Shown: one piece after another, positions 9,840 through 56,826 of the stretch
Layout: every line of letters begins with the position of its first letter
Position numbering within the stretch: position 1 is the first letter of the stretch
Sequence record: OZ195776.1
Strand: one strand, 5' to 3'
Length of the DNA: 64,000 bases
The notes under the pieces: generated by a model
Database searches by the model: none
Told to the model about the DNA's origin: nothing
Seen by the model: the letters and a program-made list of their open reading frames with translations, nothing else
Program-made: the position numbers and the translations under genes

Positions 9840-9861
9840 GACTAAGTCGAAACAAAGACAC

Positions 9862-9888
9862 AAAAAGCCACCTTCGGGTGGCTTTTTT
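9862..9888 (+). terminator. Rho-independent terminator after gp23
   Basis: AAAAAGCCACC-TTCG-GGTGGCTTTTTT; UUCG tetraloop and U tract. Confidence 0.92.
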
Positions 9889-9900
9889 CGTTTCTGGACA

Positions 9901-9951
9901 AAATTATTTTTAAACCCCGTTGTCTCCAAATCAAAATACTGTAATATGGGC
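9901..9951 (+). promoter_or_regulatory. Early promoter GTTGTC-N17-TAATAT with AT-rich UP element
   Basis: GTTGTC 9919-9924 and TAATAT 9942-9947, followed by GGGC; same architecture recurs elsewhere in the window. Confidence 0.85.
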
Positions 9952-9990
9952 CTCAGTTAAGCAAGACCAACCCATTCCAAGGAGACAGTT

Positions 9991-27321: not shown

Positions 27322-27759
27322 ATGCAACGTCTTAGAGACAATTGGATCCCTTTGGCTGCGCTGATTCTATCTTGCGTGGTAGCAGTTGGTGGGTATTATA
27401 GCAGCACCGTAGTAGTTGCTACGAAAGTAACATATCTTGAAAGTGAACTTGCTCAAATGAAAGATCAGGCCGTGGACATCACGGTTCTTGAATCGGAAGT
27501 GAAAGCATTACAAGAAGCTGATAAGAGGTTTTTTAAGACTATGGATGGAATAGGGGAAGGATTGGTTTCTGTCTCTGATCGTCTATACTCTCTTGAGACT
27601 TTGTCGACGTTGTCAATCGATACGAATAAACGTCTAGTGAATGCTTTGGATAAACTGGATGGGACTTTGGATAAGATTAACGATACTGTTATCCGTTTAG
27701 AAACAAGAGTTAGTGTGTTAGAAGGGCAATACGATCGTACTGATCGTAGAAACCCATAA
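27322..27759 (+). CDS. Membrane-anchored coiled-coil protein (lysis or fibre-associated candidate)
   Basis: N-terminal hydrophobic helix WIPLAALILSCVVAVGGYY, then heptad-rich helix; AATAAATA at 27273 upstream. Confidence 0.55.
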   Translation: MQRLRDNWIPLAALILSCVVAVGGYYSSTVVVATKVTYLESELAQMKDQAVDITVLESEVKALQEADKRFFKTMDGIGEGLVSVSDRLYSLETLSTLSIDTNKRLVNALDKLDGTLDKINDTVIRLETRVSVLEGQYDRTDRRNP

Positions 27760-34866: not shown

Positions 34867-34884
34867 GATAATTCTCCGTAGTGT

Positions 34885-34945
34885 TTCTTAATGACCGTTC
34901 CCGGCCGACAGAGCCCATATTACAGTAATACGGATTTGAGACAAC
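34885..34945 (-). repeat. Early promoter/stem-loop cassette, family A copy 1
   Basis: GTTGTC-N17-TAATAT plus leader; 34885-34925 is identical (41 bp) to 56736-56776. Confidence 0.9.
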
Positions 34946-35032
34946 ACGTTTATACGAAATTAAACCAATTAATCGAAACTTTTTCTTTCAGGCACAAAAA
35001 ACCCGCGATGAACGCGGGTTCTTGTTTTGCTG

Positions 35033-42169: not shown

Positions 42170-42171
42170 AA

Positions 42172-42240
42172 TGTTTTCCTTTAGTAGGTCAGCCCCGTGC
42201 CAACAAAGCCCATATTACAGGATTCATTATAAAGGGCAAC
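42172..42240 (-). repeat. Early promoter/leader cassette, family B copy 1
   Basis: GTTGCC-N17-TAATAT; 42172-42222 matches 48466-48516 at 50 of 51 bp, including the RBS. Confidence 0.9.
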
Positions 42241-42266
42241 GATTGCTACCCTTTATTTTGATTATT

Positions 42267-48463: not shown

Positions 48464-48465
48464 AG

Positions 48466-48534
48466 TGTTTTCCTTTAGTAGGTCAGCCCCGTGCCAACAA
48501 AGCCTATATTACAGGAATCCGAATAAATGGCAAC
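48466..48534 (-). repeat. Early promoter/leader cassette, family B copy 2
   Basis: GTTGCC-N17-TAATAT; near-identical to 42172-42222. Confidence 0.9.
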
Positions 48535-48582
48535 ACTGCAGATACAAAAAAACCGCCTTTTGGCGGTTTAATTTAAAACGAA

Positions 48583-50918: not shown

Positions 50919-50996
50919 GTTTTATTCCTCAAGTGGTTCATTCAAATTAGTATACACATTTGTGTAGAAAAATAAAGCCGCAATTGCGGCTTTTTC

Positions 50997-51612: not shown

Positions 51613-51664
51613 AAAGAGTCCTTATAAATAACAATAAACTGCATATCCCATTTTGGAACATACT

Positions 51665-52342
51665 ATGAAAAAATACCACTATACCTACAAAACTACCATA
51701 TGTCACCCATCTAAAGGAGATTTAATTTACGTCGGTAAGCACTCGACGGATAATCTCGACGACGGATATCTTGGTTCTGGTAAGATATTACTCGCTATGA
51801 TAGCCAAATACGGCAGAGACATAGCCAGTCTGGAAGTTGCTGATATGCATTTAACTGAAAGTGCTGCGTACGAAGCAGAATGTCAGTTGATATCAGAAAC
51901 CGTACAATCATACCCAAATACCTGTTTGAATTTAACTGGGTTTGGTGGTCGTTACGATTATAATCCAGACAAACCATACGAAAGACAACCATTTCAACAC
52001 GATGAAGCTGCCAAAGCAAAAATGAGTAAGAGTCGCTTTGGAAAAAAGCAAAGTACCGAAACAAAAGCTAAGCGAGCTGCGTCACACAGAGGCCGTAAAA
52101 ACACCACCGAAACCAAGCAAAAAATGCGCGAGTCTCGATTGAAAGTTGCTCAAACTCAAGAACACAAAGATTTAGTTAGCGGTGAAAATCACCCCAAGTT
52201 TAAAGGGTGGTATCACACTCCACTTGGAAAGTTTCCAAGTGCTAATCAAGCCGCAAAAGCCTACAATACCAAAACACAGTGTATTATTAACTGGTGCAAG
52301 ACGACGAGAAAGCCGGAGTTCTGGTTTGAGCCAAAGGGGTAG
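51665..52342 (+). mobile_element. Free-standing Seg-like GIY-YIG homing endonuclease with NUMOD3/NUMOD1-like motifs
   Basis: HYTYKTT...IYVGKHSTDNLDDGYLGSG, EAE..LI, CLNL; ETKAKRAASHRG and ETKQKMRES repeats; own TATAAATA at 51623; opposite strand to neighbours. Confidence 0.88.
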
Positions 52343-52918: not shown

Positions 52919-52973
52919 AATATACCTTTGCATAAAAATAAAGCCGCTTTCGCGGCTTTTTCAATTGAATCGA

Positions 52974-53663
52974 TTACAGATTCGATAGGAACTCACGGCG
53001 AAGACCGCTATCCTTTTCTGCAAAACGACCACCGGAAGCAAGAGTAGTTGTTACAGACTGTTCGTCTTCAACGCCACGCATGCTAACGCAAGTATGTTTT
53101 GCACCCATATGAACGATTACATCGTCGGTACCCAGAATGTGTTTCAGAGCTTCGCAAATTTGCGATGTAAGACGCTCTTGTACTTGTGGGCGACGTGCAA
53201 AATATTCAACGATGCGGTTCAGCTTGCTTAAACCAAGGACTTTGTCACCTGGAATGTACGCAATTGTACAACCAAAATCACGGTCACCGAAATCGCTAAA
53301 CGGCATTAGGTGATGCTCGCAAAGAGACTTCACTTTGATGTTTTTAACGAGAACGAACTCATCACCATGACTGAACTTGTTTTCAACAGTAGTACATTTA
53401 GGGAAATGATCCGGAGTTAGACCGCTCATTAGCTCTTTAACGTACATTTTTGCCACACGACGTGGTGTTTCAACAAGCGAGTCGTCAGCCAAATCCAGAC
53501 CAAGAGTTTCGAGTACTTGCGTCATCAGACCTTCAATCTTTTCGATTTTCTCTTCTGCTGGCACGTTTACCAAATCAGTAGTTGGAGTTTGGATACCAAG
53601 CTCAAGTAGACGAGCTTCAACTGATTTACCTAGTTCTGCATTTGCTTTTGACTTATCAAACAT
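52974..53663 (-). CDS. folE: GTP cyclohydrolase I
   Basis: ETPRRVAKMY, SLCEHHLMPF, LGLSKLNRIV, RPQVQERLT, HTCVSMRGV. Confidence 0.97.
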   Translation of the reverse strand: MFDKSKANAELGKSVEARLLELGIQTPTTDLVNVPAEEKIEKIEGLMTQVLETLGLDLADDSLVETPRRVAKMYVKELMSGLTPDHFPKCTTVENKFSHGDEFVLVKNIKVKSLCEHHLMPFSDFGDRDFGCTIAYIPGDKVLGLSKLNRIVEYFARRPQVQERLTSQICEALKHILGTDDVIVHMGAKHTCVSMRGVEDEQSVTTTLASGGRFAEKDSGLRREFLSNL

Positions 53664-53689
53664 AAATTTTACCTTTCGACTTTATTATC

Positions 53690-53767
53690 CAGACCAAAAA
53701 GGACAAGGGGTCTGTCACCTTGGACTATCTCAACTCAGATAGCTAGGGAAGCATATCACCACTTCCC
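53690..53767 (-). promoter_or_regulatory. Structured 5' leader of folE: two hairpins and an H-type pseudoknot
   Basis: GGGAAG/CTTCCC, CTATCT/AGATAG, CAAGG/CCTTG with loop CAGACC complementary to downstream GGTCTG. Confidence 0.55.
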
Positions 53768-53791
53768 ATAATTGTAAACGTATTTATTAAT

Positions 53792-54472
53792 TTAAAACGG
53801 CCAGTCATCATCCAATACTTCGAAGTATGGTGCTGCTGAAATCGTACCCTCGATTCGAAAAATCGAACGGTCTGGGTTACGGACCGCAACATTACGCGAT
53901 GGCGTCGTTGCAGCTCGCTGATCCGTAATATCATCACGGAACGGGCCAGTATCAACAACACCATGCACCAATATTGCACTTTTGCTACCGAGTTCTTTTG
54001 CGTCAGCATCAAACTGAGTAAATTGATTGAATCTGTCGCTAGGTTTGTTAAATTCTTTTACGAATTCAGGGCGTAGCTTAACACCAGTAATAGTACCGTC
54101 AGGACCAGCATACGTCGCCGCTTGGTGGATGTTTTCTGTTAGAAACGTTGCATAGCCATCTCGACTGCGCATTCCATAATCACCTCGCGTACCACGATAC
54201 CAAATCGCGCCACCTACTAAACGTGCAGCTTCTCGTTTCAAACCTGTTCTCCAAACGCTCTCTAAATCAGCAATTGCCTTTTTGACCGCAGATGGAGCAT
54301 CGTCTGTATCGTAACCGTTCATGAACAGTTCCCATGTAAAATCATTGTAATTGCTCGGAGAGACGGATTTAACGATTTTAACACGAGACTGATCATCCGT
54401 TGCTGCTATGAATTCTGCTACAGCTCTTTCAACTGCTACAGATTCCCATAGATGTTCATTGAATGATTTCAT
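53792..54472 (-). CDS. Putative packaged ADP-ribosyltransferase-like protein
   Basis: Leader MKSFNEHLWE; WYRGT, FLTENIHQAATYAG, ILVHGVVD pattern; GATAAATA at 54498-54505. Confidence 0.55.
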   Translation of the reverse strand: MKSFNEHLWESVAVERAVAEFIAATDDQSRVKIVKSVSPSNYNDFTWELFMNGYDTDDAPSAVKKAIADLESVWRTGLKREAARLVGGAIWYRGTRGDYGMRSRDGYATFLTENIHQAATYAGPDGTITGVKLRPEFVKEFNKPSDRFNQFTQFDADAKELGSKSAILVHGVVDTGPFRDDITDQRAATTPSRNVAVRNPDRSIFRIEGTISAAPYFEVLDDDWPF

Positions 54473-56721: not shown

Positions 56722-56735
56722 AATGTTTTCCTGAA

Positions 56736-56796
56736 TTCTTAATGACCGTTCCCGGCCGACAGAGCCCATATTACAGATCTGAGTAGAAATGGCAAC
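56736..56796 (-). repeat. Early promoter/stem-loop cassette, family A copy 2
   Basis: GTTGCC-N17-TAATAT; 41 bp identical to 34885-34925. Confidence 0.9.
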
Positions 56797-56826
56797 ACTA
56801 AATAACAGAAAAATGAGGAAAGAATA

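Follow-up and report, generated by a model that had tools for sequence, protein, structure and literature searches.

The THF-II RNAs are validated riboswitches of the folE 5′ UTR, which mask the ribosome-binding site (RBS) (PMC6800512). They are rod-like hairpins, consisting of helices P1 and P2 with an asymmetric bulge and no pseudoknot, and are found only in Rhizobiales (PMC6800512). In type III preQ1-I riboswitches, an H-type pseudoknot has a pyrimidine-rich loop that occludes an AAGG sequence (PMC11625349). In the preQ1-I class, UU follows the 5′ strand of P1, and an AC/UC motif containing a specificity C stands just before the P1 3′ strand; preQ1-II is confined to Bacillota (PMC11625349).

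Folate synthesis and 7-deazaguanine synthesis both begin with FolE, the latter being the route to queuosine and to the modified guanines in some phage DNA. In T4-like phages, leader pseudoknots and AU-rich start regions take part in protein-mediated translational control, as in gene 32 and RegA. The T4 gene 32 pseudoknot, a 5′-terminal element that is not known to include the Shine-Dalgarno (SD) sequence, nucleates the binding of gp32.

Here we describe the folE leader of Vibrio phage D479. From comparison of sequences, the leader is read as the core of a conserved family of 5′-UTR RNAs upstream of folE in T4-like aquatic phages, which would fold into an RBS-masking pseudoknot; we put the probability of this at roughly 0.6. 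The best reading is that this is a new family of RBS-masking pseudoknot leaders, absent from Rfam 15, and a literature search found no description of a phage folE-leader pseudoknot family.

The folE locus of Vibrio phage D479

The DNA analyzed (the window) is a stretch of 64,000 nucleotides, and is identical in sequence to Vibrio phage D479 (OZ195776.1, 257,764 bp). D479 is a T4-like phage. Its genes include late transcription factors of the gp55 and gp33 types, a RegA-type translation repressor, DHFR, thymidylate synthase and the usual replication genes; the gene annotated 'translation repressor' is VPHD479_0187. The start codon of folE is the AUG at 53663-53661 on the minus strand. The gene and the parts of its leader are listed here.

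52974-53663, minus strand: folE (GTP cyclohydrolase I), annotated VPHD479_0069, matching Pfam PF01227 (GTP_cyclohydroI) with E = 5e-57
53664-53791, minus strand: folE leader gap, 128 nt, between a hypothetical gene (53792-54472) and folE
53781-53788, minus strand: AAUAAAUA box, resembling a T4-type late promoter and aligned with the ATAAATA box of relatives
53746-53767, minus strand: hairpin 1, GGGAAG/CUUCCC, in D479 only, without a counterpart in relatives
53724-53743, minus strand: hairpin 2, GCUAUCU/AGAUAGU, in D479 only, placed where most relatives have domain A
53718-53722, minus strand: CAAGG, the 5′ strand of stem 1, which can pair with CCUUG at 53704-53708
53709-53714, minus strand: CAGACC, the 5′ strand of P1 (5′ side of stem 2 in the first-pass annotation), with all 6 pairs compensatory in the family
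53696-53708, minus strand: pyrimidine-rich 13-nt loop CCUUGUCCUUUUU, whose opening CCU is invariant in the family
53697-53702, minus strand: CCUUUU, the 5′ strand of P2, within the P1 loop, which pairs with GAAAGG
53690-53695, minus strand: GGUCUG, the 3′ strand of P1, which pairs with CAGACC
53678-53689, minus strand: A-rich linker L3, GAUAAUAAAGUC, 12 nt; in relatives 12-14 nt, of the (G)UUAAAC.. or AAUAAA.. type
53672-53677, minus strand: GAAAGG, both SD sequence and 3′ strand of P2, forming 6 bp with 53697-53702, one of them G-U
53661-53730, minus strand: family core (domain B) through the AUG, matched at full length by covariance model R1

The remaining connectors of the D479 fold are L1 (CCUUGU), L2 (a single U), and an 8-nt spacer between the SD and the AUG.

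The NTAAATA core of the upstream box is also found upstream of the phage's own late genes, and an identical AATAAATAC precedes the D479 gene at 27322. The leader transcript probably starts near 53775, from a putative T4-type late promoter. Hairpin 1 is overlapped by a weak sigma70-like match, TTTACA-17-TATGCT. The T4-type early promoter pattern over this hairpin, GTTTAC-N-TAnnnT, occurs 3 times in the window against 2.7 expected, and in view of this lack of enrichment the match is treated as chance.

About 100 kb from folE, the D479 record contains a cluster (152.8-159.5 kb; L436:42824-49524) with a QueC-like gene, two radical-SAM proteins and a nicotinamide phosphoribosyltransferase. The QueC-like gene makes a partial match to Pfam QueC of 32.8 bits, and no QueD or DpdA was identified in the cluster. 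Judged by these genes, D479 may make a 7-deazaguanine derivative.

Close to folE, strong terminator-like hairpins are present on the minus strand at 52940-52959 and 50919-50996 (AAAGCCGCGAAAGCGGCUUU then AUUUUUAUG), and their U tract leads straight into the initiation codon of the gene that follows. No SD is evident for the phosphoesterase gene that begins at 52933. Two genes downstream of folE, a homing endonuclease gene (51665-52342, plus strand) is inserted in the run of minus-strand genes, with its own perfect T4 late-promoter box, TATAAATA, at 51623-51630. The window also has a repeated sigma70-like promoter, GTGTTGCCATTT .. CTGTAATATGGGC, which is followed by a conserved 5′ leader (CUUUGUUGGCACGGGGCUGACCUACUAAAGGAAAAC..AUG), and a 16-mer of the repeat, TTGTTGGCACGGGGCT, is present in two exact copies. 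The repeat is probably the early promoter and leader cassette of D479, and its copies are located as follows.

42170-42266, 48464-48582, 34867-34968 and 56722-56826, minus strand; 9840-9990, plus strand: promoter and leader repeat

The first-pass annotation of the leader had placed, after the AAUAAAUA box, hairpins 1 and 2 and then an H-type pseudoknot composed of stem 1 (CAAGG/CCUUG) and stem 2 (CAGACC/GGUCUG), with UGA as loop 1 and UCCUUUUU as loop 3. All of these elements are present on the minus strand where it had placed them, and the gap from stem 2 to GAAAGG (53677-53672) is 12 nt, as it had counted. A pseudoknot of this quality is found in 17 of 3000 dinucleotide shuffles (0.6%) and, when the window is cut into 998 tiles of 128 nt, in 3 of them. 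It is thus uncommon, yet a few are expected per 64 kb, and the match is not significant window-wide. The leader has a nested minimum free energy (MFE) of -30.1 kcal/mol (z = -1.67), a value reached by 14 of 200 shuffles. The same annotation had considered the other intergenic gaps to be less packed with structure. However, z-scores of -3.4 to -4.2 are obtained for five other gaps (60 nt or longer), compared with -1.7 here, so that the claim of unique structuring for the folE gap fails.

Related leaders and their covarying helices

No close DNA relative of D479 is present in the phage collection, and megablast returns D479 alone; distant blastn matches to the locus are confined to the folE coding sequence. 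The folE loci were therefore gathered via the protein, and consisted of 65 + 80 from IMG/VR, 80 from metagenomes and 80 from bacterial genomes. Two conserved leader types are seen upstream of these genes. The type resembling that of D479 accompanies FolE proteins 53-60% identical to D479 FolE, and has a constant layout: an AGG motif, a 6-7-bp stem, a pyrimidine-rich loop of 11-15 nt which begins with CCU in all cases, an A-rich linker of 12-14 nt, and the SD. The sequence of the stem varies from locus to locus (CAGACC, GACAGC, GACGGC, GUCGGA, GUCUGU, GACCGU, AACGGU, GUGAGU).

At least 53 metagenomic loci (L085-L150, with many of L170-L230) have the second, different leader type, in the region about 100 nt upstream of folE. 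Its parts are a TAAATA box, the hairpin GCUAC-ACAAMGG-GUAGC, a stretch rich in A and U, and an SD within a small hairpin, AUCC/AACC...AAGGAAGG(AU/UU). The corresponding FolE proteins form one clade with 95% support, and the four loci tested had no Rfam match. KVP40-type phages have a different, short folE leader with a terminator-like hairpin. In Acidovorax phage ACP17 (L439:2339-2491), a 153-nt folE leader has CCUUG in a hairpin loop, and the complementary CAAGG lies farther downstream, past that hairpin; the pseudoknot topology differs from that of the family, and the models described below do not match it.

A covariance model, R1, was built from 15 metagenomic phage folE leaders, leaving out D479, Vibrio phage Bakedbeans, L076 and L081. 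Its structure input consisted of the hairpin only, and P2 was not in the model. The best match of R1 in the 64-kb window, searched on both strands (128 kb), is to 53661-53730 on the minus strand, at full length and with all 6 pairs formed (24.1 bits; a rough E-value of ~6e-4). On the sense strand, this match directly precedes folE, and its 3′ end falls at the start codon. The next matches in the window have E of at least 0.05 and are partial, covering flank plus SD. R1 also recovers two members on which it was not trained, L081 with 30.7 bits and L076 with 18 bits. The 80 bacterial folE loci, which lack the element, yield a single chance-level match, and a search of 755 kb of unrelated viral DNA yields nothing at E ≤ 0.1 except two known members. 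Neither R1 nor a second model, R2, significantly matches Bakedbeans (E = 0.5) or L164, whose family likeness is by eye only.

R2 detects the leader of Aeromonas phage Ahp1_CNU-2021 (MT161459), a cultured member of Straboviridae, at the right place (L438:2385-2497; E = 0.021). Its domain B reads CAAG-UAC-[GGAUGC]-CCUUGACUCUUCC-[GCAUCC]-A-rich-GAAGAAAGG. By eye this leader seems to have two domains, the upstream part being CUCGUU..GUUGU..CCGAAAGG..AACGAG, where the domain A model finds nothing.

The pairing of the helices was counted in a model-derived alignment of 18 leaders (A7). P1, which corresponds to stem 2 of the first-pass annotation, is paired in 100% of cells, and each of its 6 pairs shows compensatory changes. 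For P2, formed between the last seven nucleotides of the loop and the SD region, the paired fraction is 92.4%, with compensation at 6 of 7 pairs. For the two helices together, 96% of cells are paired, compared with 75.5% in shuffles, none of 500 being as high; controls in which the strands were slid gave 35-63%. Both strands of P2 are compositionally biased, and a test of cognate against non-cognate pairing was therefore added. Cognate loop-SD duplexes have a mean of -8.0 kcal/mol, against -5.3 kcal/mol for non-cognate ones (p < 2e-5; p = 2e-4 after removal of the two strongest cases). Examples of P2 are CUCAUUC/GAAUGAG (L081), UUCCUUC/GAAGGAA (L154), CCUCUU/AAGAGG (L156), and the 11-bp helix CUUGACCAUUC/GAAUGGUCAAG of L164; the pairings in L081 and L164 are not of low complexity.

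Stem 1 gives a different result. It is 73.5% paired against 70.4% in shuffles, its cognate pairing does not differ significantly from non-cognate (p = 0.11), and it is missing in L164 and Bakedbeans. It may form nonetheless: matching variants of its two strands are found in separate lineages (CAAGG/CCUUG, CAAG/CUUG, CAGG/CCUG, AAAGG/CCUUU); the CAAG(G)/C(C)UUG pair recurs in L071, L076 and Ahp1, and relatives keep an AGG-containing motif at this position. The covariation thus points to a conserved pseudoknot made of P1 and the loop-to-SD helix, not of stem 1.

The first-pass annotation had also proposed a terminator-like alternative fold, with a stem followed by a U run. A terminator scan does not flag it, and the leader does not qualify as an intrinsic terminator or attenuator, for which a G+C-rich stem with a U run directly behind it should be conserved in relatives. 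In the relatives the U run is not kept as a tail: it forms one strand of the loop-SD helix, and is replaced by UCUCC, UCUU or CAUUCC, paired with the SD region. Hairpins 1 and 2 occur in D479 alone and are not conserved. The annotation would therefore appear to have found a real conserved regulatory RNA, with an H-type pseudoknot immediately upstream of the folE RBS, while misdrawing its second helix and its alternative fold. The covariation that it had proposed to look for across phage folE leaders is seen in its stem 2, and is not significant in its stem 1.

Most members have a second H-type pseudoknot upstream, domain A, composed of GCAAC..CCAGG..GUUGC, a mini-hairpin, and CCUGG. In a plain MAFFT alignment it is 97.1% paired, compared with 83.8% in shuffles (0 of 500 as high), and 8 of 14 pairs are compensatory. 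The domain A model, R3, has no match in the D479 leader, and L076 and L164 also lack this domain, which shows that it is not universal in the family. Searching viral contigs with a 14-base domain A pattern gave nearly all chance matches; among the 80 loci listed, 2 carry the element, both of them already known.

An ATAAATA box lies 5-8 nt upstream of the structured leader in nearly all members, D479 included (alignment A8). The phages that carry the leader are T4-like and have gp43, clamp loader, RegA, UvsX, gp41 and ThyX; in them the local gene order is phosphoribosyltransferase, small ORF, PTPS/QueD, folE. Metagenomic members encode PF01818 (Translat_reg) beside the clamp loader, and a cyanophage relative has QueE, phosphoribosyltransferase, QueD and FolE grouped together. 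The element is always immediately upstream of folE, in one copy per locus, and searches of 160 kb of D479 and of 17-kb contexts from the relatives yielded no further copy.

In a tree of FolE proteins, all leader-bearing loci fall into one clade (SH-aLRT 95%), with D479 inside it as sister to Bakedbeans (97%). The presence of the leader requires 3 changes on this tree, compared with 18.5 for shuffled labels. The clade also includes many FolE relatives whose genes lack such a leader, and the distribution fits descent of the leader together with folE, followed by losses.

D479 has the CCU-start loop, the 6-bp P1, P2 with a 12-nt linker, and the ATAAATA box. Its P2 is the weakest of the family, with 6 bp, a terminal G-U and -3.9 to -5.8 kcal/mol; set against other members' tails, it comes 15th of 17. 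In the D479 core, a competing nested fold has an MFE of -11.6 kcal/mol, compared with -7.7 for P1 alone. These points count against the preferred reading, as do the lack of domain A and the lack of a significant match in Bakedbeans, the closest FolE relative of D479. By these comparisons D479 appears to be a divergent member with a weak P2, and we think it somewhat probable that the member it carries is functional.

Possible mechanism and rival explanations

The most likely role of the leader, as suggested by its conserved pairing, is to control the amount of FolE made. The P1 hairpin (53714-53709 with 53695-53690) would present the pyrimidine-rich loop, the 3′ half of which (CCUUUU, 53702-53697) is predicted to pair with the SD (GAAAGG, 53677-53672) across the 12-nt A-rich linker. 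The resulting H-type pseudoknot of P1 and P2 would mask the RBS, and so lower translation of FolE. The invariant CCU(UG) at the 5′ end of the loop could pair instead with the upstream CAAGG, to form stem 1. This makes CAAGG (53718-53722) a possible rival of the SD for the P1 loop; the CAAGG/CCUUG duplex in D479 is calculated at -4.3 to -5.9 kcal/mol. A 13-nt loop cannot fully close both helices under P1, by a geometric argument of our own, which considers stacked helices of 5 and 6 bp, connectors of 0-1 nt, and adjacent halves of the loop. Two alternative pseudoknots sharing P1 are therefore proposed, one with the SD masked and the other with the SD free, and an effector would shift the balance between them.

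A riboswitch or autoregulatory role for the leader, which the first-pass annotation had raised, is a live hypothesis. The leading candidate for the effector is a small metabolite of the route from GTP to pterins or to 7-deazaguanines, which would make the leader a riboswitch. That it belongs to a new riboswitch class, specific to T4-like phages and sensing a product of the FolE pathway (preQ0, CDG, a pterin or folate), is put forward tentatively, and we consider it more unlikely than likely.

The pseudoknot could alternatively be a translational operator, in which a RegA-type repressor or FolE would bind the pseudoknot and the AU-rich start, with no small molecule involved. Genes for RegA-type repressors are present in D479 (VPHD479_0187) and in the metagenomic relatives (PF01818), the start region of D479, AAAAUUUAUGUUU, is AU-rich, and the T4-like phages offer the precedents noted above. 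We nevertheless regard such an operator as doubtful, since RegA has many target genes, yet the element is found at folE only, and a covarying RNA-RNA helix with the SD already accounts for repression without a protein. Somewhat more doubtful is a constitutive structural leader with no specific effector, which would set a fixed low level of translation, protect the 5′ end of the mRNA, or respond to temperature. It would suit a small fold whose D479 version is weak, in a setting where SD-masking structures are common, an upstream domain has been lost or replaced in several members, and many FolE relatives of the same clade are leaderless. It would not explain why unpaired nucleotides are kept invariant (the CCU at the start of the loop, the GUUAAAC-type A-rich linker, and AAGGU and UUUU in domain A), and two pseudoknots, kept in most members across FolE proteins only 53-60% identical, exceed the needs of a simple attenuating hairpin.

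The metagenomic family might be real and the resemblance of D479 to it vestigial or due to chance. The modest score (24 bits), the weak P2, the lack of domain A and the unremarkable z-score of the fold are compatible with this, as is the lack of close relatives of D479 for a test of conservation. On the other hand, the match is the top one in 128 kb and falls exactly upstream of folE, on the same strand, ending at the AUG; all 6 pairs of P1, the CCU at the start of the loop and the same ATAAATA box upstream are present, and the FolE phylogeny places D479 within the leader-bearing clade. We therefore think this, too, unlikely. There is finally the original model of the first-pass annotation, in which the pseudoknot of stems 1 and 2 alternates with an intrinsic terminator, giving transcriptional attenuation. 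Its stems do exist, and the nested MFE fold uses the alternative GACAG/CUUGUC. The terminator stem is weak, however, and with the scan, the replaced U run and the behavior of stem 1 described above, the model is very improbable.

The reading that we prefer, a family of leaders that mask the folE RBS, has some wider implications. Such an RNA would be the first dedicated cis-regulator in viruses of folE, an auxiliary metabolic gene, and if it binds a metabolite, it would represent a new riboswitch class found mainly in phages. With a riboswitch here, the phage could adjust the entry step of the pathway, and with it the supply of precursors for folate, queuosine or DNA modification, during infection. 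The strong covariation makes the family directly testable, with Vibrio phage D479, and probably also Aeromonas phage Ahp1_CNU-2021, as cultured entry points.

Comparison with known riboswitches and leaders

A search of Rfam 15 with D479 53300-54200 gave no match at E ≤ 10, and 16 related loci gave none at E ≤ 1. In particular, there were no matches to preQ1-I (RF00522), preQ1-II (RF01054), preQ1-III (RF02680) or THF-II (RF03111), and the first-pass annotation had likewise noted a lack of fit to preQ1-I. Membership in preQ1-I/II/III, THF-I/II, SAM-II/V and the like is rejected on this basis.

Several aspects of the phage leader can be compared with the gene 32 and RegA systems of T4, in that a leader of a T4-like phage would combine an H-type pseudoknot with an AU-rich start region for translational control. 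In contrast to the gene 32 structure, the SD of D479 is part of the pseudoknot, and the gene under control codes for a metabolic enzyme. A hairpin embedded in a pseudoknot loop, as in domain A of the phage family, is found in preQ1-II. The likeness to preQ1-II and preQ1-III is that of a pseudoknot in which an anti-SD stretch buries the SD, and in preQ1-III, as in the phage family, the SD pairs with the hairpin loop (PMC11625349). The topology of both classes is different (HLout), and D479 also lacks domain A.

By architecture, the closest known system would be preQ1-I type III, where a pyrimidine-rich hairpin loop likewise pairs with an AAGG SD across an A-rich 3′ linker (PMC11625349). The phage leader also resembles preQ1-I in being tied to the 7-deazaguanine pathway, which starts with FolE. 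The sequence signature differs, the D479 loop starting with CC and ending with UU; across the family, CC, CU or UU stands before the P1 3′ strand, with no conserved AC/UC. The loops differ as well: the phage family has an invariant CCU start, an L1 of 5-8 nt, an L2 of 0-1 nt and an L3 of 12-14 nt, whereas preQ1-I has a short first loop and an A tail of 6-8 nt.

By function, the closest known system would be THF-II. Like those RNAs, the element is short (about 60 nt), is in the folE 5′ UTR, is exclusive to folE, and has the RBS as a strand of a conserved helix; folding blocks initiation in THF-II (PMC6800512) and would do so here. It is unlike THF-II in being an H-type pseudoknot with no sequence similarity; THF-II is a rod of P1, bulge and P2, in which the right shoulder of P1 contains the RBS (PMC6800512). 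From these comparisons, the phage folE leader would work in the manner of the THF-II and preQ1 riboswitches, while being a member of none of them.
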